Positions 2,709 through 59,464 of a stretch of 64,000 nt of DNA are shown here, piece by piece; positions within the stretch are counted from its first letter, which is position 1, and every line of letters starts with the position of its first letter. Under the pieces are notes generated by a model. That model saw only the letters and a list, made by a program, of their open reading frames with translations, was not told where the DNA came from and searched no databases. A program made the translations under genes and the position numbers. The stretch is from sequence record NC_061441.1. The stretch is one strand, 5' to 3'.

Positions 2709-3410
2709 ATGAAAAAGATTCAACACGTAACACTTCCGACCGATGCACTCAACGGACTCATTCATGGCTATTACCACCATAGCAAAACCACTGATGAATT
2801 TTGCAGATCGTTGATCTATATTGACGTTACCGACCGCAGCGCCTCAGATGCGCTGTATGCTATATTGAAACGTGAGCCGACAAAAGGCATTGTCCCTATG
2901 GGATATGATTGCTTACGAGAAGCACGTGGGCACACTGCTCCAGCACAACTCGCAATCGTATTGTCCAACAACCTGTTGCATATAGATAATACGAAGATGG
3001 CTGGAGGCGTACAGGCCATCTTTAACGCTCTGGCCAGAACCACGCACACCAACGATACTCAAATAACTGTGTACGGCGAGCCTGGAGTAAGTAAGATTCT
3101 CAACATAATGCGCGACATTCAATATAAAGAATATATTAACGCGCCTGAATCCGACATTGTGCTTGGCGACTTTAACCTTGAGTCGAACATGACTATAGAC
3201 CATTTCGTTCACATGGCTATCGATCCTAAGTTCGAAGAAGCTATCCGCAATTCTCCTGCCACAGAATTTAAACTGGGCAGCAGTTTCATGTTCATGCACC
3301 CAGATGAATTGACTAAGGTTGTACGCATGGTCCGCCGTTGCAGTAAAATCTGCATCATGCACCCTGACATTCATCGCTATTACTTTGAGAACGTAATCTG
3401 TAAATACTAA
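2709..3410 (+). CDS. Hypothetical protein (paralog of 4560..5327)
   Basis: AGGAG SD; N- and C-terminal similarity to 4560..5327. Confidence 0.8.
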   Translation: MKKIQHVTLPTDALNGLIHGYYHHSKTTDEFCRSLIYIDVTDRSASDALYAILKREPTKGIVPMGYDCLREARGHTAPAQLAIVLSNNLLHIDNTKMAGGVQAIFNALARTTHTNDTQITVYGEPGVSKILNIMRDIQYKEYINAPESDIVLGDFNLESNMTIDHFVHMAIDPKFEEAIRNSPATEFKLGSSFMFMHPDELTKVVRMVRRCSKICIMHPDIHRYYFENVICKY

Positions 3411-7618: not shown

Positions 7619-7993
7619 ATGACTGCTATCAAATTTGATTCTGTTTACGACATTCTTACCGAGATGGACGAATGCGCCAGAGATGTTGACTTCACCAAGA
7701 CTCTTGGCTTCGACCCAATCAAAGTAGAAATTCTGCAATGCGGTCTGCAAGAAGATCTCGGCGTGTACGCGTGTTTGCCGAACGCCACAAACATTCTGAT
7801 TGCCGATTCGACTGACCTGTTCTCTGAGCACCTTAAAGGTGACGGCGAAATCACAGTCTGCCGAATCTTAACGCCTAACGGCGAGATGTTCGATGAGCCA
7901 GAAGTCGAAGTCAAACAGCTTGGCACGTTCAATGATTTTGATTCAGCTTATGCTGCATGGTTAGCGGCGATTAACGAAGAAATCGACAAATAA
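7619..7993 (+). CDS. Acidic hypothetical protein
   Basis: GAGGGG SD; downstream of cassette 1. Confidence 0.8.
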   Translation: MTAIKFDSVYDILTEMDECARDVDFTKTLGFDPIKVEILQCGLQEDLGVYACLPNATNILIADSTDLFSEHLKGDGEITVCRILTPNGEMFDEPEVEVKQLGTFNDFDSAYAAWLAAINEEIDK

Positions 7994-8038
7994 TAGGTCA
8001 AAAGCGCTGTAGCAATGCAGCGCTATTTATCGTACTAT
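7991..8038 (+). promoter_or_regulatory. Promoter cassette copy 2
   Basis: AAATAATAGGTCAAAA; TACTAT at 8033, GG 37 nt upstream. Confidence 0.65.
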
Positions 8039-8090
8039 GTAATCTCTGGCGCAATGATGCGCACATACAACACTTGCCGAGGGGCACACA

Positions 8091-8792
8091 ATGAAAGCAG
8101 CAAACTTTGACGTAGCATTTAACGCGAAAGACGAAGCAACCTTAAACGCATACGCAGCGAAAATTCTCGAAGCGCTTAACGCTCTGGGGCGTTATGACCT
8201 GAAGATCAATATCATCTTCGGCACTGACCCGTTCGGCGAACGCCCTGATTTTGTGAATGACCCGAACGGTTTTCGCGTTACACAGAACGGCGAAGAAATT
8301 TTTGATATCTACACGCCGACAGAAAAACAGATTGAAGGCGATGCGTCAGATGCTTTCATCTACGCTTCATGGGCCGACGGCGAAGCGCCGTGGGGTAAAG
8401 ACGTGTCAGACAATGACATTGCAGAAATCGCCGAACACCTGAACGCTGCAATCCCGCGTGTCGGCCGTGTGTTCAACGAATCTGATCGTCAGATGCTGCA
8501 AAAACTCGCCGACACTTTGAACGCTCGTATGGATCGTACCGATGCGCGAGTGATCGTAACGAACGGTGCCGAAGACGATCTGATTCTTATGGTAGTTGGC
8601 TATGACGCCGAAGAAGATGAAGTCAGTGATGAATACGGCTTCTTCTTGAGCCTGCCGTACACAGATGAAGACGGCACCGACGAGAAATACAGTCTGCACT
8701 ACGCTGGCTATCCCGGCGTGAACGACCACTCATATAGCTCTGCTGACCTCGACGAAATTTCAGAAGAAATCGAGTCACTCGACCTGCTCTAA
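8091..8792 (+). CDS. Acidic hypothetical protein
   Basis: Shares a 20-bp leader TGCCGAGGGGCACACAATGA with gene 7619. Confidence 0.85.
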   Translation: MKAANFDVAFNAKDEATLNAYAAKILEALNALGRYDLKINIIFGTDPFGERPDFVNDPNGFRVTQNGEEIFDIYTPTEKQIEGDASDAFIYASWADGEAPWGKDVSDNDIAEIAEHLNAAIPRVGRVFNESDRQMLQKLADTLNARMDRTDARVIVTNGAEDDLILMVVGYDAEEDEVSDEYGFFLSLPYTDEDGTDEKYSLHYAGYPGVNDHSYSSADLDEISEEIESLDLL

Positions 8793-15949: not shown

Positions 15950-17010
15950 ATAAGACCGTTGGCCTGATGATTGATGAAGACGTAATGAACTGGCTGGACA
16001 TGCTGCTTGCGGGCGAACTGAGCAACGTCTTAGGTGCGTTGAACAATATCGTGTATGCCCGCCGTCAGGAGCTGTCTGTTGAACGTCTGACCGAAGACGA
16101 AGACATTGGTGCGCTCTCTCATAAAGAGCTGGAGATCATTCTGCGCTACGCCGCTCCTAATCATGAGTACGATACGACGGTGCTGTCGAACGAACAACTG
16201 CTTCGTCTGGCGATGGATGCACAAGGGATCATCTCGTACACACTGCCATGCCATTGCTCTCCTATCATGGTTAAACGTGCTTTCGCTAACGGCAACGTGT
16301 GCTCACTGCTTGGCAGTTTTTCGAATCGTGCTGATATCGTCATGGCTGTACATCACTGGGAATGTGGTCTGTCCAACATCTCGCTCGACGGTGTGACTGG
16401 TAACGACGAACGCCCAGACGAACAAGGCATGTACCTGTGCTACGATGAGCACAAGCAAGTTCGTTATGGCCGACTGTTCAAGAACGCCAACGACGGCTGG
16501 ACATTCAGCGAGTATTATTCTGCTGGTGGATCTACTACGTGGCTTGAAGCGAGTCCAAACAATGCGCTTGATGGTGACGACCTGCCGATCAGCCTGCTGA
16601 CTAACTGGGTATTCGTTGTTCCAGATCGTTCGCCGTCTATTCTCAAACCTGCTGAGGGATTCAAGCGTCTGTCCGACACACAACGCATCTTCCTGTATCT
16701 GCGTAGCCTGAGTCCTCACGTTAAAGCTGAGATCGTCGCACACTTCGACGGCGTTCTGGACAATCGATCATTCACCTCTGTCGATCAGATTGGTCGCCTG
16801 ACTGAAAAAGACTGGCGCGATGCTGCGATTGCTATCGGTGAAGAAGAAAGTGGCCAAGAAGGTCCTCACTACTGGGATGATCGTAGTGCGTGGGCTTGCT
16901 TCGTCGCTGTGCTCAACTCTCTGTGCTTCGACATGGACACACGCGACTTCCAACCGCAGTATGAGTACCAGGCCAACGACGACACTATGGAAGAAGACAA
17001 CAATGGCTAA
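15946..17010 (+). CDS. Hypothetical protein with HeH-like motif
   Basis: 354-aa ORF; LSHKELEIILRYAAP...LSNEQLLRLAM. Confidence 0.85.
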   Translation: MNKTVGLMIDEDVMNWLDMLLAGELSNVLGALNNIVYARRQELSVERLTEDEDIGALSHKELEIILRYAAPNHEYDTTVLSNEQLLRLAMDAQGIISYTLPCHCSPIMVKRAFANGNVCSLLGSFSNRADIVMAVHHWECGLSNISLDGVTGNDERPDEQGMYLCYDEHKQVRYGRLFKNANDGWTFSEYYSAGGSTTWLEASPNNALDGDDLPISLLTNWVFVVPDRSPSILKPAEGFKRLSDTQRIFLYLRSLSPHVKAEIVAHFDGVLDNRSFTSVDQIGRLTEKDWRDAAIAIGEEESGQEGPHYWDDRSAWACFVAVLNSLCFDMDTRDFQPQYEYQANDDTMEEDNNG

Positions 17011-17536
17011 ATCACTCGGCGTATACATGACTTACATTCTGCGTCACAAGCCGCAGGATATCGGAATCGCAATGGACACCCAGGGTTGGGTGTCTGTTCT
17101 GGACTTCTTGCAGAAAGCAAAGTATGTCAAACAGGTCACTCTCGAAATGCTGATTGCAGAAGTTGAGGCGGACGAGAAAGGCCGTTTCGAGTTCAACTCT
17201 AACCGCTCCAAGATTCGTTGTGTGCAAGGCCATTCGGTTGAGAACGTTATTCTGCATCTTGAACCGTTCACTGACCTTGCGCCTTTGTATCACGGTACGG
17301 CAGATAAGAACGTGGCATCAATCATGCACGAAGGTATCACGAAGCGGAAACGCAAACACGTCCACATCAGCCGTGAAATAGAAACAGCCGAGAACGTTGG
17401 TCGTCGTCACGGTGCACCTGTTGTGTTTCAGATTGATACACAGGCAATGATCACTCACGGCTATAAGTTCTACCGAGCCGAGAATGGAGTCATCCTGACC
17501 GATCACGTACCGTCCAGATATATCAAGTTGGTGTGA
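17003..17536 (+). CDS. kptA: RNA 2'-phosphotransferase Tpt1/KptA
   Basis: ILRH, GWV, IRCVQGHS, LYHGT, GITKRKRKHVHIS, VGRRHG, FYRAENGVILTDHVP motifs. Confidence 0.95.
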   Translation: MAKSLGVYMTYILRHKPQDIGIAMDTQGWVSVLDFLQKAKYVKQVTLEMLIAEVEADEKGRFEFNSNRSKIRCVQGHSVENVILHLEPFTDLAPLYHGTADKNVASIMHEGITKRKRKHVHISREIETAENVGRRHGAPVVFQIDTQAMITHGYKFYRAENGVILTDHVPSRYIKLV

Positions 17537-43029: not shown

Positions 43030-44619
43030 ATGGCACGTCTGGAAACTAACACTAACCTGGTTGGCAAAACTATCATCCTGCTGAACGGCACCAAATCTAA
43101 AATCGAAGATGCAATCGCGTCTGGCTATAAAGTGAAGGGCCAGTCAAAACGTATCGCCACCCGCTGCGTCATCAAAGAAGGTTCTCACTTCCGCGAAATT
43201 GAGCGCATGAACATGAGCCAGCTGGAAGATACTGGTGAAGGTTACGTTAAACTGAAAGATGCGAAAGCGTCTGGTAAGAAAGCTGGCGCGAAAGAGAAAG
43301 AGCCGAAAGCGTCTGGCAAGAAGACTGGCGGCAAAGCTACGGCCAAAGAGAAAGAGCCGAAAGTTCGCCGTAAGTCTTCTAAAGAGCAAGGCGATGAGTA
43401 TCAGGCTCTGGCGAAAGAAATCATCAAAGGCGGCAAACGTGCTGCGCCAGTTGAAATCGACGAGATCGATGGCGACCTGACTGATACCGTTGCTCAACGT
43501 CTGGTAGACGTACTGAACAATACCGAAATCGCCAAGCTGTGCGCTGACAACAAAACGCCGATCGCTAACGCCATCGAAGTTGCTTACGGCGCTGAGTTCG
43601 CACCTGAAACAAACGTCATGCAGATCACGCTGAGCCTGCAATACGCGAAGCCTGTTAAAACGCAGTCATCTTCTACGCTGGAAAACGCCGATGCAATCGC
43701 GGCCCGTGCTAAGAAAATGATCGCGCCGAAGCTGTCTAAGAAACTCGCTAAGGCGATTCGTGAAGCGTTCGGCCTGGAAGACGCCGCCGAGCTTGAAGCT
43801 GGTACCGTGTTGTTGTCTGACGGCGCTGAGTTCGTCTTCTGCGGCGAGAGCGCGAAGCACCTCGGCAAAGCGCTGCTGTATGTTGTAGAGACCGACAAGT
43901 TCAAATCTGTTGTAGGCTCTGCGCTGGCTGATTACGAAATTGGTCAGGAAGAAGAAGAGGAAGAAGAGGAAGACCTCGAGGAAGAGGAGTCTGAGGAAGA
44001 AGAAGAAGAGGAGGAGGAGGAGGAAGAAGAAGACGGCGAAGAAGACGACGGTGAGTCTGACGATACTGAATACCAGTATGTGGCCGTGACCAAAGATCAT
44101 ACCAACATGATCAACAAGAAAGTCACCGCTAAGTATCACGCCGCGCTGGCTGAGCGCTTCAACACAACCGAAGAAGCTCTGGTACCTGGCCTCGTGTTGA
44201 CTGACGGCGAAACAACGTTCGCTTACCTGGGCTGTGATAGCAAAGGTGGTCTGCTGGTCATCGACGTTGAAGCTGAGGAGAACGAAGAAGACGTTCTGCT
44301 GTATAGCAAAGCCGATATCAAAGAACTGACCGACTTCAATCCTGTGCTGGATGACGTAGAAGGCGCTGCCGATGATGAAGGCGAAGAAGAAGACGGTGAA
44401 GAAGACGGTGAAGAAGAAGACGGTGAAGAAGATCTGGACGAAGAAGACGGCGAAGAGGAAGAAGACGACGAAGACTTCGACTTCGATGATGTTCCTGCCG
44501 TTGACCTGAAAGATCTGTCCGAAGACGAACTGCGTGACCGTGTCGTTGAAGCCGGCCTGACCACCGTGCGTAAAGCTGACAAAATGAACGCGGCTCAACT
44601 GCGCAAGCTCCTGAAATAA
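43030..44619 (+). CDS. Poly-Glu/Asp modular protein with duplicated internal domain and C-terminal HeH
   Basis: 529 aa; basic N-terminal repeats (KASGKK...KEKEPK twice); two acidic tracts; GAGGAG SD. Confidence 0.9.
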   Translation: MARLETNTNLVGKTIILLNGTKSKIEDAIASGYKVKGQSKRIATRCVIKEGSHFREIERMNMSQLEDTGEGYVKLKDAKASGKKAGAKEKEPKASGKKTGGKATAKEKEPKVRRKSSKEQGDEYQALAKEIIKGGKRAAPVEIDEIDGDLTDTVAQRLVDVLNNTEIAKLCADNKTPIANAIEVAYGAEFAPETNVMQITLSLQYAKPVKTQSSSTLENADAIAARAKKMIAPKLSKKLAKAIREAFGLEDAAELEAGTVLLSDGAEFVFCGESAKHLGKALLYVVETDKFKSVVGSALADYEIGQEEEEEEEEDLEEEESEEEEEEEEEEEEEDGEEDDGESDDTEYQYVAVTKDHTNMINKKVTAKYHAALAERFNTTEEALVPGLVLTDGETTFAYLGCDSKGGLLVIDVEAEENEEDVLLYSKADIKELTDFNPVLDDVEGAADDEGEEEDGEEDGEEEDGEEDLDEEDGEEEEDDEDFDFDDVPAVDLKDLSEDELRDRVVEAGLTTVRKADKMNAAQLRKLLK

Positions 44620-52063: not shown

Positions 52064-52615
52064 ATGGCTAAAGCACCAAAGACTTCACTGACACCTACCC
52101 TGGTTTCTCGTATCGCTAAAAAATCCGGCTCTATCGGTACTTCAAAAGTTAAGCCGTCTGACCTGCCGCACGATATCGTGATGGAAACCGTGTTGCCTGT
52201 TGAGCTGATTGGCTTCATTACCGACCGCACCGAAAACAGCGTTACCATTCGTCACAAAAAAGGTCACGGTTCTTCTGCGCAAATCGTTTCTACCTTCGGC
52301 CCGAACCAACTGCTGTCCGTGCTGGGCGAAGCTGGTTCTCACGGTAGCGTTATCGCTCTGATTAATGCGCCGGTTCGTGAGTACAAAGGCTTCAACGTTA
52401 AATACAAAGGCTCAACGCTGATCGCTACCTCTGTTGAGACTGGCGAAGTTGTTGAAGTGAACACCGCACTGCCTGGCATTACCGTTCGCGCTACTGTGAA
52501 CGAAACTGCTGCCGCTAAAAAGTACGGTACGCCGCTGCCTACCAAAGCTAAAAAGCTGGACAAAGGCGACAAAGCTGGCAAATCTGCGAAAGCGGTAAAG
52601 AAAGTAAAAAAGTAA
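52064..52615 (+). CDS. Beta-rich protein with Lys-rich termini
   Basis: GGAG SD; strong codon bias; C-tail KAKKLDKGDKAGKSAKAVKKVKK. Confidence 0.88.
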   Translation: MAKAPKTSLTPTLVSRIAKKSGSIGTSKVKPSDLPHDIVMETVLPVELIGFITDRTENSVTIRHKKGHGSSAQIVSTFGPNQLLSVLGEAGSHGSVIALINAPVREYKGFNVKYKGSTLIATSVETGEVVEVNTALPGITVRATVNETAAAKKYGTPLPTKAKKLDKGDKAGKSAKAVKKVKK

Positions 52616-52641: not shown

Positions 52642-52712
52642 TCGAAATCTGTAAATATTAAGTATGCAGCGGGATAAAATGTTCCGCTGCCTGTCTCTCG
52701 AAATCTGTAAAT
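52642..52712 (+). repeat. 15-bp direct repeat containing the TCTGTAAA motif
   Basis: TCGAAATCTGTAAAT at 52642-52656 and 52698-52712. Confidence 0.85.
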
Positions 52713-52758: not shown

Positions 52759-53553
52759 ATGGCTAAAGCAACCGCAAATACCGCAGCAATCGTTCTGGCT
52801 AAAATGCTGGGCGTAGTTATCGAAAACGCCGACGCGAAAGAAATCGCAGCAATCCTGAAAGAAGCCGGTCTGACTGTCTCTGGCGGTAAAGTGGTAAAAG
52901 CTGAAAAAGGCGGTAAAGCTGCTAAAGGCAAAAAGGCCAAAGCACCTACCGTTGCTGAAATCGTCGCTGCCATCAAGGACGAAGAAGAACTGGACATCTC
53001 CGGCGTAAGCGAAGATGACCTGCGCGCCGCTGTAGTTAAAGCGAAACTGTCCACCGCTAAGAAAGCAAAAGCGCTGGACGAAGATGACCTGCGCGATCTG
53101 CTGAACGAAAACCTGGGCGGCGAGTCCGATGAGGACGAAGACGAAGAAGAAGAGGACGACGAAGACGAAGACGAGGACGAAGACGACTCGGACGACGAAG
53201 ATGAAGACGGCGACGACGAAGACGACGAAGACTCTGATGAAGAAGAAGAGGACGACGAAGACGACGAAGACGGCGACGACGATGAAGAAGAAGACGAGGA
53301 CGAAGACGAGGATGAAGATGAGGACGAAGATGATGAAGATGATCTCGACCTCGACTCCCTCGACAAGAAAGAGCTGTTAGCTCTGGTCCTCGAACACAAG
53401 CTGGCGCCGGCTAAGAAAGCCAAGAAAATGGACGAAGATGAACTGCGCGAACTGTGCGAAGAACACTTCGGCGGCGAAGATGACGAAGACGAAGATGAGG
53501 ACGAAGACGACGAAGACTTCGACGATGAAGACGAAGACGAAGACGACGAATAA
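52759..53553 (+). CDS. Poly-Asp/Glu protein with two HeH repeats
   Basis: 74-residue almost pure D/E tract (53122-53343); repeats LDISGVSEDDLRAAVVKAKL...LDEDDLRDLL and LDLDSLDKKELLALVLEHKL...MDEDELRELC. Confidence 0.9.
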   Translation: MAKATANTAAIVLAKMLGVVIENADAKEIAAILKEAGLTVSGGKVVKAEKGGKAAKGKKAKAPTVAEIVAAIKDEEELDISGVSEDDLRAAVVKAKLSTAKKAKALDEDDLRDLLNENLGGESDEDEDEEEEDDEDEDEDEDDSDDEDEDGDDEDDEDSDEEEEDDEDDEDGDDDEEEDEDEDEDEDEDEDDEDDLDLDSLDKKELLALVLEHKLAPAKKAKKMDEDELRELCEEHFGGEDDEDEDEDEDDEDFDDEDEDEDDE

Positions 53554-53771
53554 GTCCTGATCTGAACCGGCCGCCCCTCTAGTTCTAACGAATGAGCGAG
53601 GGGCAAATATTCGTGTTAAAATGATGCGAATATTTTTGTAAAAAGTTTCAAAATTCCTGTTGTCGTATGTTGAACATAATAATGTATGACTACAGGAAAT
53701 CAAACCTGAATAAATTTATCTTTTCATCCAGCGGTGAAAACGCCGCATCAAATATAAAGTAAGGAACTATC

Positions 53772-54290
53772 ATGTCCAAGAAAGCAATTAGCGGCCTGAA
53801 CAAAGAAATCCGCGCAATCGAAAAATCTGAAAAAGCTCTGACCAAAACCGCTGGCGAAATCACCAAACAGTCCGAAGCGCTGGCTGCTCGTCGTGCTGGT
53901 CTGAGTGCCCAGGTCGAAGCTCTGCAAAACGACGGCGCGGCTCCTGCTGCTAAACCTGCTAAAGCGAAAGCCGCTAAAGCAGAGAAAGCTGCTAAGCCTG
54001 CCAAAGCTGAAAAAGCTGGCAAAAAAGCTAAAGCTGAAAAAGCTGAAAAACCTGCTAAGGCTAAAAAAGCCAAAGCTGAGAAAGCTGAGAAGCCTGCTAA
54101 AGCAGACAAAAAAGCAAAAGCCGCCAAAGCTGAAAAGCCGGCCAAAGCTGAAAAAGCTGGTAAGAAAGCTAAAGCAGAAAAACCTGCTAAAGCTGAAAAA
54201 GCCGGTAAGAAAGTGAAAGCAGACAAAGCTGGCAAAGCCGGTAAGAAAAGCAAAAAAGAAGCCGAAGACTTCGACTTCGATATGGAATAA
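53772..54290 (+). CDS. Histone H1-like (Hc2/AlgP-like) Lys/Ala/Pro repeat protein
   Basis: N-terminal coiled coil, then tandem KPAKAEKAGKKAKAE-type repeats, then acidic tail EAEDFDFDME; AAGGA SD. Confidence 0.85.
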   Translation: MSKKAISGLNKEIRAIEKSEKALTKTAGEITKQSEALAARRAGLSAQVEALQNDGAAPAAKPAKAKAAKAEKAAKPAKAEKAGKKAKAEKAEKPAKAKKAKAEKAEKPAKADKKAKAAKAEKPAKAEKAGKKAKAEKPAKAEKAGKKVKADKAGKAGKKSKKEAEDFDFDME

Positions 54291-54322
54291 GCAAGCGCCG
54301 CTCATTAGCGGTACTTGATTCG

Positions 54323-54354
54323 AAAGGGCAGCGCTGACGAGCGTTTGCCCTTTT
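54323..54354 (+). terminator. Intrinsic terminator
   Basis: AAAGGGCA-GCGCT-GACG-AGCGT-TTGCCCTTTT. Confidence 0.8.
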
Positions 54355-54387
54355 GTCATATCTGTGTCAATTTTCGAGGTGAATCGA

Positions 54388-54870
54388 ATGTCTGCCGAAC
54401 ATCTGCTTAACGACGACCTGCCTGACGACTCCTTAGTTGTCCCTGCCCTCAAACAGGACAAGCCTTCCTATTACGACTTGATGACGCTACGCTTAGAAGC
54501 TGGCGCACGTCTTGCTCGCTCCCTTAAAACTCTGGTCGATGCGCGTGTCATTCACGGTCCAGCGTTAAACGACCTGCTCCCAGCCGCATTGCGTATCGCT
54601 GAAACCCACTGGGCTGATATCTGCAATGGCCTAACTCCTGTTCACGACGAGAGCAATAAAATCACGCTTGTCGGTAATCTCCCTGCCTGCATCGAAGCGT
54701 TCCGCATTGTCGTCATGGAACATGCACAACGTAACGCACTGGAACTTGAGTGCCGTAACATGGTGGCACACGACGATGGCTTTAAGCTGCTGACTCGCCC
54801 ACAACTGCTGCATATTGAACCTAAACATGTCTGCGATGGAAACTGCGACCATGACTCAAAAACTGTCTGA
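54388..54870 (+). CDS. Hypothetical protein
   Basis: GAGGTG SD. Confidence 0.75.
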   Translation: MSAEHLLNDDLPDDSLVVPALKQDKPSYYDLMTLRLEAGARLARSLKTLVDARVIHGPALNDLLPAALRIAETHWADICNGLTPVHDESNKITLVGNLPACIEAFRIVVMEHAQRNALELECRNMVAHDDGFKLLTRPQLLHIEPKHVCDGNCDHDSKTV

Positions 54871-55521: not shown

Positions 55522-57555
55522 ATGAAAATGGCCAAAGCGCCGAAGGCTGCCAAAGTTAAAAAGAATACCGGTGACGGTTCCCAAGAAGGGTTCGTCATTG
55601 CGGAAGGACTTGACGGGATTCGTTTGAATCCGGGAATGTACATGGGTGAACGTGGCTCCGACATGGCGTACCGCGGAGTTAAGGAGCCTGTTGATAACGT
55701 CTATGACGAATTGATGGCGGGCCGCACCAAAGTTCTGGAAGTTGTGATTGACTACGACAACGACCTGAACATCGTAGCCGATATGGCGAAAGGCATTCCG
55801 ACCGACTTCAAGAAACTGAAAGACGGTTCGAAAGAAACTATCATGACCGCAGCGTTTAGCCGTGCTCATGCTGGTGGTAAGTTCAACGACCAAGCATATA
55901 AGACCTCTGCCGGTACTCACGGCGTAGGCGTTGCCGCACTGAATGCAATCTCCAGTCAGTTGCGTGTGTGGTCAATGTACAAAGGTGGCTGCGCATACCA
56001 GATGTGGGAATGCGGTGTTGCCAAGTCTGGTAAAGACCCTAAGCAGGTCAAAGCCGTAGACAAAGATGTTATGAGTCTGCTGCGTGAAAAGAAACACAGC
56101 AAGTACGGTACGATTGTCGCATGGACCCTCGACCAGACCGTTGTGTCTGCTGACGTACAGCGCGGTAAGAAGTTGCCGAAGAACTATCGTCACGCTTCGC
56201 CAGACCCAGCACGTATCGGTGAGTGGCTTCGCAACATGTCGCTGCTTAACCCAGGCTTCGAGATTCGCCTGACGCTTATCAAGAAAGGCAAGCGTAAAGA
56301 GTTCACTTTCCACAACAAGAAAGACCTTGCGTTTATCGTGAAGACGATGGTAGACGAACGCGAGTTGGAGATCGTCGGTAAGCCGTTCACGTTCCAACAT
56401 GAGAACATCACGGCAGCGCTTGCGTGGACTAACCATGCAGACACTGACAACTTCCTGTCTTTCGTTAACACCAGCCCTACAGTTGACGGCGGGTGGCACG
56501 TTGTTGGTTTCCGTGACGCGCTGTTTGAAGCTATCAAGCCTTTCATGAAAGAGCCGAAAGGTAAAGGCAAGAAGAAGCAGGGATTCAAACAAGAAGACTT
56601 GCTCATCGGCCTGACTGGTATGTTCGACTGGCGTATGCACGGTGCTCAATACACCTCACAGGTTAAAGATAAGCTGGCGAGTCGTGTTGAGAAAGAAGTG
56701 TACGAGCTGATGAAAGACCAGCTTGTGAAATACTTCAAGGACAATAAGAAAGTCGCAACGACGATCATCAAACGCGCCGAAGCAATGAACAAAGGCCGCG
56801 AAGAATTGTCCGCAGTCGTGAAGTCTATGGCAGACACGAAGAAGAAGCTGAAAGGCAACTCGCTTCCTGCTGACCTGATCTCTGCGCTCAAGTGTAAGCC
56901 GCATGAGCGCGAGCTTATCGTGGTGGAAGGTGATTCTGCTGGTGGTACTGCTAAACATGCGCGTAACCCTGACCATCAGGAAGTTATGCTCGCTGGTGGT
57001 AAGCCGCTGAATGGGCTGAAAGCAAGTCTGGCTGACGTGCTCAAGCACAAAGAAGTGCAGGGCATGTTGGTGTCTGTAGGCGCTGACCTGAAATCGCTTG
57101 ACCCGAAAGCTGAAAACCCAGTGTTGAGCACGAAAAACCTGCGTATCGGTAACTTGCTTTTCCTGATGGATGCTGACCCTGACGGCTTCCACATCGCAAC
57201 GTTGTTCTTGGGCGTTATCTATCGTCTGCTGCCTGATCTGATGAAAGAAGGTCGTGTGTGGATTGTCGATGCACCTCTGTATAACGTGATGCACAAAGGC
57301 ATTCACTATGGCGGTATGACGTTCGAAGAATGCCGCTCTAAAGCACCGTCTGCTGTAAAAGACAAAGAGATTGTACGCGCTAAAGGTTGGGGTGAAGTTG
57401 AACCTGACGTACTTGAAGCTATCGCGTTCAATCCGAAGACTCGCCGTTTGATTCGCGTTAACCCGTTCGTTAGCGTAGAGCAAGAGCGTTTCTTCCGTGG
57501 TGTTGTGGCAGAAGATGCCGTGCATCGTCGTCGTCTGCTGGGTCTGGAGGATTAA
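55522..57555 (+). CDS. gyrB: Type IIA topoisomerase subunit B (GyrB/ParE-like)
   Basis: IRLNPGMYMG, KEPVDNVYDE, HAGGKF, GTHGVGVAALNA (GHKL ATPase); EGDSAGG, DADPDGFHI, KGWGE (TOPRIM). Confidence 0.96.
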   Translation: MKMAKAPKAAKVKKNTGDGSQEGFVIAEGLDGIRLNPGMYMGERGSDMAYRGVKEPVDNVYDELMAGRTKVLEVVIDYDNDLNIVADMAKGIPTDFKKLKDGSKETIMTAAFSRAHAGGKFNDQAYKTSAGTHGVGVAALNAISSQLRVWSMYKGGCAYQMWECGVAKSGKDPKQVKAVDKDVMSLLREKKHSKYGTIVAWTLDQTVVSADVQRGKKLPKNYRHASPDPARIGEWLRNMSLLNPGFEIRLTLIKKGKRKEFTFHNKKDLAFIVKTMVDERELEIVGKPFTFQHENITAALAWTNHADTDNFLSFVNTSPTVDGGWHVVGFRDALFEAIKPFMKEPKGKGKKKQGFKQEDLLIGLTGMFDWRMHGAQYTSQVKDKLASRVEKEVYELMKDQLVKYFKDNKKVATTIIKRAEAMNKGREELSAVVKSMADTKKKLKGNSLPADLISALKCKPHERELIVVEGDSAGGTAKHARNPDHQEVMLAGGKPLNGLKASLADVLKHKEVQGMLVSVGADLKSLDPKAENPVLSTKNLRIGNLLFLMDADPDGFHIATLFLGVIYRLLPDLMKEGRVWIVDAPLYNVMHKGIHYGGMTFEECRSKAPSAVKDKEIVRAKGWGEVEPDVLEAIAFNPKTRRLIRVNPFVSVEQERFFRGVVAEDAVHRRRLLGLED

Positions 57556-57557
57556 TC

Positions 57558-57812
57558 ATGTTCAACGTTTCAAACTTACCTGACGGCACAATGGTACGTT
57601 TTCTTGATATGCCTGCTGTGCAATACCCACCACTGACTGAGGAACAAAACAGTCAGTGTGAGTCATTGTACGGGCAAGCGCGTGAACTGGCGAAGAACGT
57701 TAATGTGTCTGGGTTCACTGTCGTTGACGGCAAACTGAATGAGCGTGTGCAGGTTCAAATGAGCCGCACCCCTCTCGATAAGATCAATGCGATTGCCAAG
57801 GGAGAACAGTAA
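57558..57812 (+). CDS. Hypothetical protein between topoisomerase subunits
   Basis: GGAGG SD; TAATG-coupled to subunit A. Confidence 0.75.
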   Translation: MFNVSNLPDGTMVRFLDMPAVQYPPLTEEQNSQCESLYGQARELAKNVNVSGFTVVDGKLNERVQVQMSRTPLDKINAIAKGEQ

Positions 57813-59464
57813 TGGCAATTACGCCGAAGAAAGTAAAAAAGGTTAAAGCGACTGCGGTAGCAAAAGCCGCTAAGCCTGCAAAGCTCAAGTCGAAAGCGGT
57901 ATCTGCCGACGACATTAAGAAGAAGAAAAAGAAAAGCACCGAAACATCCGCAACAACGGCGGTCGGCATTTCTCTCTATCCGATGCTGGGACAAGATGAG
58001 TCGCTGATTCGTGACGAGAACCTCGCGGACTATACGCGCCGCGCTCTCTTCCAGTATGGCTCATACGTTGTTGAAGACCGCGCTATCGCTGACTACCGTG
58101 ACGGTCTCAAGCCTGTGCACCGTGCGCTGCTTTGGTCTCTATGTGACTTGGGCCTACGTCCCGGCGGAGCGTTCAAGAAGTCTGCGCGTACTGTTGGTGA
58201 TGCGTTAGGTAAGTATCACCCGCACGGCGATGCTGCTTGTTACGGTGCGATGGTAACGATTGCGAATACAGTGCCACCAGCCGTAGCTGGCCAAGGTAAC
58301 TGGGGAGACCCTGTAGCACCTGCTGCTGCGATGCGTTATACCGAAGCGAAGATGAGTAAGTTTGCGGGTAGCTTCCTGCTGGACCCAGACTATCTCGAAG
58401 TGACGCCGATGGTAGACAACTTCTCGAACGACATGAAGATACCTCTGTATCTGCCCGCGCTGCTGCCGTACATGTTGTTCAATGGTAGTGTGCCTGCTCC
58501 AGCGTATGGCGTTAAGTGCGGTAACCCATCGTTCAGCTTTACGTCAGTCAGTAAGGTCGTGTGTGACATGCTGGCAGGTAAAGAGTACGATGCGAAGAAG
58601 CTGGCGAAGACGCTTGAGATTAACCACGAGTACGGTTGTCTTGATGCAAGCTCCGATGCTGACTATCTCGCATTGATCGAAACAGGTCGCGGCAAAGTCA
58701 CATACGAACCTCAGATGAAGGTCGATGAGAAGACGAAGACCATCACTGTGCAAACGTATGTGCCTGGCGGTATGTCCAACAACGCAGCCATCACGAAGAA
58801 GCTGGAGAAGATTGCAGAGTGGTCTGGTGTTGTCTCTGCGTCGAACGCCAGCTCGAAGAAGAACAAAGACGCGGGCCCGTGGGGTGCAGCGTTTGCGATT
58901 CGTTGTCGTGGTAGCGAAGACCTGCTGTATGAAATTGCAGAGAAGGTGAAGAAAGAAATCACCAGCGCCATTAACTATTCTCTCGGTGTGACAGTGCGCC
59001 GCGCTGATGCCTCAAACAAGTTCATGTACCTGAGCTACGTGAAGTATTTCAAAGCGTGGATTGCGTATCGCATTAAGCTGGAAACTGCGATGCTCACCAA
59101 CAAGAAGGCGAAAGCAGAGAAAGCCCTTCATCTGCAAGAAGTCTACTTGTGGGCAGTTGACAACATGAAGCAACTGCTGGCCGCACTGCCGAAAGCCCTG
59201 ACCGCAGAAGACCCAGACAAGATGCTGGCGAAGCTGTGTAAGATTCCTGTTGAAGATGCGAAAATCATCCTCGACCGTCAAGTGCGTAAACTGGCGAAAC
59301 TTGAACGTGCTGGGCTGGTGGCCAAGATTAAGGAAATCAAGGCCGAGATTGCAGAGTATAAAGCGGGACTGAAAGAGCCTGGTAAATACGCTGCTGCTGG
59401 AACGGCTGCTAAAGTTAAGGCATACCTGAAATCGCCTGACGATAAGCTGCCTGTAGGTCTGTAA
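57812..59464 (+). CDS. gyrA: Type IIA topoisomerase subunit A (GyrA/ParC-like, no beta-pinwheel CTD)
   Basis: DGLKPVHR, KKSARTVGDALGKYHPHGD, GQGNWG, AAMRYTEAK (catalytic Tyr); 550 aa. Confidence 0.96.
   Translation: MAITPKKVKKVKATAVAKAAKPAKLKSKAVSADDIKKKKKKSTETSATTAVGISLYPMLGQDESLIRDENLADYTRRALFQYGSYVVEDRAIADYRDGLKPVHRALLWSLCDLGLRPGGAFKKSARTVGDALGKYHPHGDAACYGAMVTIANTVPPAVAGQGNWGDPVAPAAAMRYTEAKMSKFAGSFLLDPDYLEVTPMVDNFSNDMKIPLYLPALLPYMLFNGSVPAPAYGVKCGNPSFSFTSVSKVVCDMLAGKEYDAKKLAKTLEINHEYGCLDASSDADYLALIETGRGKVTYEPQMKVDEKTKTITVQTYVPGGMSNNAAITKKLEKIAEWSGVVSASNASSKKNKDAGPWGAAFAIRCRGSEDLLYEIAEKVKKEITSAINYSLGVTVRRADASNKFMYLSYVKYFKAWIAYRIKLETAMLTNKKAKAEKALHLQEVYLWAVDNMKQLLAALPKALTAEDPDKMLAKLCKIPVEDAKIILDRQVRKLAKLERAGLVAKIKEIKAEIAEYKAGLKEPGKYAAAGTAAKVKAYLKSPDDKLPVGL

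Follow-up and report, generated by a model that had tools for sequence, protein, structure and literature searches.

A jumbo-phage protein family with a zipper head, a lysine-rich arm and an acidic-phenylalanine tail

Polycationic proteins and the three-part build of gp334

Disordered Lys/Ala/Pro repeat arms are found in the C-terminal domain of histone H1, in AlgP of Pseudomonas and in Hc2 of Chlamydia, and arms of this kind bind DNA and other polyanions non-specifically. In HBHA of Mycobacterium tuberculosis, a coiled-coil oligomerization region precedes a C-terminal tail of Lys/Ala/Pro repeats, to which polyanions such as heparan sulfate bind, and PhaF of Pseudomonas putida carries a short leucine zipper and an AAKP-type Lys-rich DNA-binding tail together with an N-terminal polyhydroxyalkanoate-granule domain. 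Acidic C-terminal peptides that recruit partner proteins are known from the single-stranded DNA-binding protein SSB and from gp2.5 of phage T7; in both, an OB-fold body is combined with a chain that ends in the aromatic residue, its carboxylate free. HBHA has also been reported to be nucleoid-associated (PMC10665949). Here, we analyze a stretch of 64,000 nucleotides (the window; positions 202,839-266,838 of NC_061441.1) from the 266,838-bp genome of Erwinia phage pEa_SNUABM_16 (genus Alexandravirus, host Erwinia amylovora) and, within it, the gene for gp334, a protein of three parts: a helical zipper head, a Lys-rich disordered arm and an acidic-Phe tail. We consider it quite possible, stopping short of probable, that gp334 is made in abundance, forms dimers and, as a polycation with a docking tail, coats or bridges DNA. 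The gene and its parts have the following window positions.

53772..54290, plus strand: gp334 open reading frame (ORF), 172 amino acids plus stop (YP_010300095.1, labelled hypothetical protein in the record; PHROG 38087)
53778..53933, plus strand: N-terminal helix, residues 3-54, a 7-heptad leucine zipper (from heptads and AlphaFold2)
53937..54257, plus strand: disordered Lys/Ala/Pro/Glu arm, residues 56-162 (from composition, repeats and AlphaFold2)
54258..54287, plus strand: tail EAEDFDFDME, the last ten residues, with the pattern Phe-acid-Phe-acid-Met/Val/Leu (from sequence and conservation)
53761..53766, plus strand: ribosome-binding site AAGGAA, ending 5 nt ahead of the gp334 ATG

All neighbors of gp334 lie on the same strand, and two longer ORFs running antisense across the gene (53690..54253 and 53748..54461, both minus strand) were rejected as artefacts because the sequence is repetitive and of low complexity.

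The family is confined neither to this phage nor to its genus. gp334 matches PHROG 38087, to which no function is assigned, with E = 9.1e-39 (residues 1-172 against positions 2-191 of the 191-position profile). A tblastn search with the head returned 57 phage records, with Alexandravirus, Salmondvirus, Yoloswagvirus, Sasquatchvirus, Snuvirus and Yersinia phage fHe-Yen9-02 represented, and a profile built from eight orthologs also identified gp334 in Pseudomonas phage Lu11 and Achromobacter phage Motura. The phage group has been termed "Lupandier" or "hairy Myoviridae" and includes Lu11, PaBG, the Dickeya JA/AD phages, Y3, Yoloswag and Alexandra (PMC7412058; PMC6143709). When 1.84 billion representative proteins were searched exhaustively with phmmer, 10 matches were obtained at E <= 0.001; among the eight examined, six match through the repeats only, and two metagenomic proteins, P0003 and P0007, of which P0007 is encoded on a 202-kb contig, share the full three-part architecture. 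A tblastn search with these two against isolated phages found nothing. A homolog search with residues 1-60 of gp334 as query returned no protein at all, gp334 included. The 16 orthologs compared below come from jumbo phages of Erwinia, Dickeya, Yersinia, Pseudomonas (Lu11) and Achromobacter (Motura) and from two metagenomic contigs, and all of them possess head, arm and Phe-bearing acidic tail. The heptad head, basic repeat arm and acidic-aromatic tail that a sequence-only reading had recognized in gp334 are hence confirmed and conserved well beyond pEa_SNUABM_16. The ortholog in pEa_SNUABM_5 (NC_061450.1, ~256151) is labelled 'putative valyl-tRNA synthase', while every other member is labelled hypothetical; we take this label to be a spurious coiled-coil or low-complexity match.

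The same reading had termed the protein "Histone H1-like", a description that its composition bears out and its homology does not. H1, Hc1, Hc2 and AlgP families gave no match to gp334 in Pfam (E <= 0.01) or NCBIfam, the only Pfam matches are to coiled-coil families and all below threshold, and a PDB sequence search returned nothing meaningful. The nearest family-labelled ESM Atlas cluster carries Pfam HC2, with a score of 0.77 that, being below 0.9, is a lead only. Like the H1 C-terminal domain, AlgP and Hc2, gp334 has a disordered Lys/Ala/Pro repeat polycation; unlike them, it has 11% acidic residues interspersed in the arm, an acidic-Phe tail and a leucine zipper as its head, where the others have a winged-helix globular domain or none. 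Among the systems we know, HBHA and PhaF are the closest in build, as both join a coiled coil or zipper to a Lys-rich tail. Neither has an acidic-Phe tail, we found no sequence relationship of either to gp334, HBHA is a cellular surface or nucleoid protein with a much shorter Lys tail, and a PhaF-like protein (P0011) matches gp334 in phmmer via repeats only. We found no described phage family of the Lys/Ala/Pro-rich H1-like type, although the principle of organizing DNA with polycations is itself old. Likewise, we found no precedent for a zipper, a charge-clamped arm, a putative docking tail and a charge-matched polyacidic partner combined across a jumbo-phage lineage.

AlphaFold2, run without an alignment, models residues 3-54 of gp334 as a single helix (10-residue block means of the predicted local distance difference test (pLDDT), 89-95 over residues 1-50) and the remainder without structure (pLDDT 54-64). 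The d positions of this helix are Leu or Ile in seven out of seven consecutive heptads (L9, I16, L23, I30, L37, L44 and L51), and when residues 1-55 were shuffled 200,000 times, no Leu/Ile run of this length at heptad spacing appeared. At the a positions the residues vary (I, I, E, A, S, R, V) and are partly polar, which fits dimeric zippers. It is plausible, as had been proposed from the sequence, that the head oligomerizes through the predicted 7-heptad zipper; a parallel dimer would be the most likely form and would carry two flexible arms of about +30 each. On the opposite side of the helix, the f-position lysines K11, K18, K25 and K32 together with S19 and T26 are invariant in eight genera, which marks an exposed conserved stripe facing away from the hydrophobic seam.

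The arm (residues 56-162) contains 42 Lys and Arg residues (39%) and 12 Asp and Glu residues (11%), giving a net charge of +30, and 37 Ala (35%) and 7 Pro residues in 105-107 residues. Tandem Repeats Finder identifies a 45-nt (15-amino acid) unit in 5.5 copies at 53985-54238. Among the 16 orthologs the arm varies between 76 and 118 residues and its repeat layout varies as well, yet in 14 of them, including Lu11 and the protein on the metagenomic 202-kb contig, the net charge stays between +29 and +33, with +26 and +25 in the two shortest arms. A variable sequence and layout combined with a near-constant net charge suggests that charge, and not sequence, is what selection keeps in the arm.

In the tail, F167 and F169 are both kept without exception across eight phage genera, and an acidic C-terminal run with Phe is present in 16/16 orthologs. 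The tails read DFDFDME, DFDFEME, DFEFEME, EFEFDV, GFEFELDD, DFDFEVA, DFDDFE, DDDDSFTLGN, NEFDLED and DDDFPEE; the JA11-type tail is F-E-F-E-L-D in the alternating pattern, and hydrophobic and acidic residues alternate in most of them, which would suit a short strand-like docking peptide. The tail had been called "SSB-like", and like E. coli SSB and T7 gp2.5 gp334 does have a short acidic peptide with an aromatic at its C-terminal end. However, Phe is the C-terminal residue in none of the 16 orthologs (1-5 residues follow the last Phe in all), which makes the label a loose one, and the body of gp334 is a helix and a disordered arm, without an OB fold.

Acidic-Phe motifs related to this tail are present in two further proteins encoded in the window, as had been noted from the sequence.

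43030..44619, plus strand: gp325, 529 amino acids, with a Lys-rich segment, acidic runs, EDFDFDD at residues 482-488 and then one 40-amino acid module
52759..53553, plus strand: gp333, 264 amino acids, net charge -97, encoded upstream of gp334, with a Lys-rich N-terminal part, long Asp/Glu runs and DEDFDDE (residues 251-257) near the C-terminus

Both motifs are conserved: the DFDF of gp325 is kept in Y3, Yoloswag and fHe-Yen9-02, with DFEDDGEDY as the JA11 equivalent, and the Phe of the gp333 motif is invariant in the same eight genera as F167 and F169. The strict motif [DE]F[DE]F[DE] occurs twice in the phage proteome against 0.28 occurrences expected, and two were also reached in some of 300 shuffles. 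By count the motif is thus only weakly enriched proteome-wide, and the case for a shared functional peptide is therefore based on conservation.

A tail of this kind could also point to the host. The F-D-F-D-M-E of gp334 and the F-E-F-E-L-D of the JA11 type recall what we take to be similar clamp-binding C-terminal peptides of RB69 polymerase and E. coli Pol III alpha, and gp334 might compact or block the host nucleoid, or compete through its tail for the beta clamp or SSB-binding proteins, and so shut off host DNA metabolism. The phage group itself probably encodes a DnaN-like sliding clamp, gp175 (record 141137..142315), an assignment made through its Lu11 homolog only: the two match with E = 2e-16, and the Lu11 protein has a sub-threshold match to the DNA polymerase III beta C-terminal domain. 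In addition, a beta-subunit model was reported in the study of PaBG. No T4-type clamp (Pfam DNA_PPF) was found, and PHROGs shows no clamp among the genes around the clamp loader. On the other hand, gp175 itself has no Pfam match, to a clamp or otherwise. The tail also lacks the C-terminal Phe of the SSB tip and is equally kept in phages of Erwinia, Pseudomonas and Achromobacter, alongside phage-encoded neighbors; conservation over such disparate hosts fits a phage partner better than a host partner. We therefore regard a host-directed effector as clearly improbable.

Expression signals and the replication-gene motif

Several features of the gene are those of strong expression. Compared with the genome as a whole, gp334 prefers AAA (84% versus 47%) and GCT (60% versus 34%), and it uses CTG in 5/5 cases and GAC in 83%; this bias has the same direction as that of the major capsid gene and is stronger. 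Together with the strong ribosome-binding site and a terminator-like stem just past the stop codon, it predicts that gp334 is probably abundant. The regulatory elements around the gene are the following.

54324..54357, plus strand: terminator-like GC stem AAGGGCA...TGCCCTT, then TTTTGT, just past the gp334 stop (read by eye; unflagged by a consensus scan)
52649..52657, plus strand: promoter-like CTGTAAATA, ~110 nt upstream of gp333 (same word as an annotated Lu11 motif)
53656..53696, plus strand: conserved ~17-bp hairpin, ~75-115 nt upstream of the gp334 start (covariation, eight genera; conserved center TGTTGAACATAATAATG)

Among 9-mers, those of the GCCCTTTT type show the strongest enrichment in pEa_SNUABM_16 intergenic DNA. 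CTGTAAATA occurs 29 times in NC_061441.1, where about 2 occurrences are expected by estimate, and five of them begin within the window, at 3398, 10222, 48456, 52649 and 59470. It is typically located 26-110 nt upstream of genes, among them those for a DNA methyltransferase, NAD-ligase, DNA polymerase, the DnaN-like gp175, the clamp loader and a sigma factor, and is absent upstream of the capsid, sheath, tube, portal and terminase genes. The Lu11 record labels this word "putative middle/late promoter" and has it twice just upstream of the gp333 homolog. Since CTGTAAATA is common to gp333 and the DNA-metabolism genes, we infer that the gp333-gp334 pair is expressed alongside the latter, the promoter class itself being predicted.

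A search of the plus strand ahead of gp334 returned no sigma-70-type promoter. In the conserved hairpin, one base pair reads U-A in half of the eight genera and A-U in the remaining half; the hairpin has no Rfam match, and its conserved words are unique within the window. The hairpin may be an RNase III or other RNA processing site, a translational operator or an autoregulatory site. An additional GC hairpin is located between gp333 and gp334, at 53573-53604.

These signals also bear on the suggestion that gp334 is packaged in the head. In T4, basic internal proteins are packaged and ejected with the DNA, and gp334 could in the same way neutralize the charge of the DNA in the capsid and be ejected with it, its tail or zipper targeting the prohead. 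A polycation of high predicted abundance in a phage with a 266.8-kb genome would be suited to this task. The terminase and portal genes are located ~12 kb downstream on the same strand, and gp008 (record 7899..8282), encoded directly after the portal gene, has the acidic-Phe end ...EADEEDFA and CTGTAAATA upstream. However, gp334 does not belong to the minus-strand block in which most head and tail genes are clustered, it is encoded near topoisomerase II, and the gp333-gp334 pair is found behind a replication-gene motif that capsid and sheath genes lack. The L/I-x-E motif, the site type of the T4 prohead protease, was not seen in the gp334 head when read by eye, with no scan made. The PaBG virion study covers 14 proteins only, from Coomassie-stained gel bands. 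We found no evidence for packaging of gp334 and consider an internal head protein rather improbable.

A charge-matched neighborhood next to topoisomerase II

All Erwinia, Dickeya and Yersinia relatives share one gene order: a ~1000-amino acid protein, a ~280-amino acid protein, gp332, gp333 and gp334, with one to three small genes, in most cases two, between gp334 and the topoisomerase II subunits that follow 3'. The gp332-gp333-gp334 trio is also kept in Lu11, ~13 kb downstream of the topoisomerase genes. In Motura, the gp334 homolog directly follows topoisomerase II and the polyacidic protein upstream ends in ...EEDFDDEDDDE, and on a metagenomic contig (L015) two polyacidic genes precede the gp334 homolog, one of them ending in ...DDDDF.

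52064..52615, plus strand: gp332, 183 amino acids, with an all-beta core (residues 31-155) and a Lys-rich C-terminal tail (from conservation and structure prediction)

The gp332 model, with block-mean pLDDT of ~70-90 in the beta core, has no Foldseek match in the PDB at E <= 0.001. In JA11-type and SNUABM_7-type phages (L005, L008, L022 and L025) the Lys tail of gp332 ends in ...SDENF or ...SDEDF, with a C-terminal Phe; these ends and the metagenomic ...DDDDF are nearer to the T7 gp2.5 pattern than the gp334 tail is. A helical module of ~40 amino acids with the consensus LD..LDEDELRALV...KLA..KKAKKMDEDELRELL is present twice in gp333 (52987-53112 and 53341-53466) and once at the C-terminus of gp325 (44497-44616). 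An identity of this module with SAP/HeH was not adopted, as it rested on a lone 13-residue Pfam SAP match with E = 0.046, and a PDB profile search was empty.

The neighborhood also bears on two further alternatives. In place of DNA, the polyanionic ligand of gp334 could be RNA or the ribosome, polyphosphate or an acidic exopolysaccharide. HBHA on heparan sulfate is one precedent. For polyphosphate there is a precedent in the H1-like AlgP, which reportedly organizes polyphosphate granules (PMC9239181), and a Lu11 gene ~4 kb upstream of the trio is annotated as a putative polyphosphate kinase. However, a PPK2 domain was undetected in pEa_SNUABM_16, Lu11 and Motura, and the polyphosphate link was dropped on this account. 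With topoisomerase II and other DNA-metabolism genes as the company of gp334, a role on such a polyanion appears very unlikely.

The second alternative concerns the charge of gp333. Across 12 orthologs the net charge of this protein is -84 to -106, and the Lu11 homolog has -99 despite a length of 159 residues versus 264. gp334 and gp333, a polycation and a polyanion, might thus form a charge-matched coacervate or scaffold that concentrates DNA and Lys-tagged enzymes, with the acidic-Phe motifs acting as stickers and DNA coating being secondary; this overlaps with the DNA-coating and bridging role proposed for gp334. Consistent with such a pair, the arm of gp334 is held near +30, genes of the gp333 and gp334 types are adjacent even on the distant contig L015, and Lys-rich N- or C-terminal tags (MAKAPKAAKVKK..., ...KKKKKK) are found on both topoisomerase II subunits (window 55522-57555 and 57812-59464), UvsX and the clamp loader, with Lys-rich sequence also at the end of SSB. 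The annotated SSB is gp246 (record 201113..202381, just upstream of the window), a gene other than gp334, and it ends in ~150 residues of alternating poly-Asp and poly-Lys blocks. Against a condensate pair, its basis is purely compositional, the acidic neighbor on L015 has a charge of -55 only, and acidic and basic low-complexity sequence is spread over the proteome, proteins from the head/tail gene region included; in ~45 predicted proteins, at least one stretch of 20 residues is strongly basic or strongly acidic. The words histone, condensate and phase separation are absent from a 2026 review of jumbo-phage biology. We regard the pair as unlikely to act in this way. An extension to the trio of gp332, gp333 and gp334 as a charge-matched phage chromatin or condensate, that is, a DNA compartment without membrane or shell to which Lys tags admit enzymes and in which acidic-Phe peptides make the connections, possibly to the DnaN-like clamp, is less likely still. 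To our knowledge, the jumbo-phage lineage of pEa_SNUABM_16 is not known to form a nucleus.

Polyacidic disorder is known to buffer polybasic DNA binders, as in the acidic tail of HMGB1 and the prothymosin-alpha/H1 pair, to which gp333 and gp334 can be likened as an analogy without homology. The one sub-threshold Prothymosin match in Pfam is on gp325, not on gp333 or gp334. In the DNA-coating and bridging role, gp333 would be the counter-ion or chaperone of gp334, or a competitor of DNA for the arm.

A possible role of gp334 in organizing phage DNA

In the coating and bridging role that we favor, gp334 would be synthesized in quantity in the DNA-metabolism phase of infection and its arms would bind non-specifically to DNA or to some other polyanion. 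A dimer with two arms would be capable of bridging, and gp334 dimers could thus bridge, coat or compact the phage DNA, as do the H1 C-terminal domain, AlgP, HBHA and PhaF. Replication-phase phage DNA is the likeliest substrate, given that the charge is conserved, the protein is predicted to be abundant, topoisomerase II is encoded nearby and the promoter-like motif is shared. The tail would serve as a docking peptide for a protein partner, with like peptides in gp325 and gp333. One candidate receptor is the stripe of invariant lysines on a second dimer's zipper, which would give rise to head-to-tail networks; other candidates are gp175, topoisomerase II and a partner common to gp325 and gp333.

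Several points weigh against this explanation. gp334 has no homology to characterized DNA-binding proteins in Pfam, NCBIfam, the PDB sequence search or phmmer. A polycation binds any polyanion, RNA, polyphosphate and acidic proteins included, and DNA is therefore not singled out as the ligand of gp334. With regard to timing, the conserved hairpin that gp334 itself has upstream differs from the CTGTAAATA sites, whose class is predicted, and the nearness of the terminase and portal genes makes a link to packaging possible. Moreover, charged low-complexity sequence is common in the proteome, and part of the gp334 pattern may be a habit of the lineage.

A protein of the gp334 type is kept across phages of ~220-280 kb that infect plant and opportunistic pathogens (Erwinia, Dickeya, Yersinia, Pseudomonas and Achromobacter). 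If gp334 organizes replicating or packaged DNA, it would show how a 0.25-Mb genome is handled in large phages without a protein nucleus, and gp333 and gp334 would constitute a simple two-protein system for charge-driven DNA organization in bacteria. If it merely binds polyanions non-specifically, gp334 would be an ordinary abundant accessory protein.

Short motifs were also observed at the ends of two proteins encoded elsewhere in the genome. gp216 (record 180060..180398) starts with the short motif MSDDDFHFEFGAEDMDFD, and gp023 (record 16717..17088), annotated as primase, has the C-terminal end ...EQLLDLTLPFVRK, which presumably resembles the bacterial beta-clamp-binding motif.

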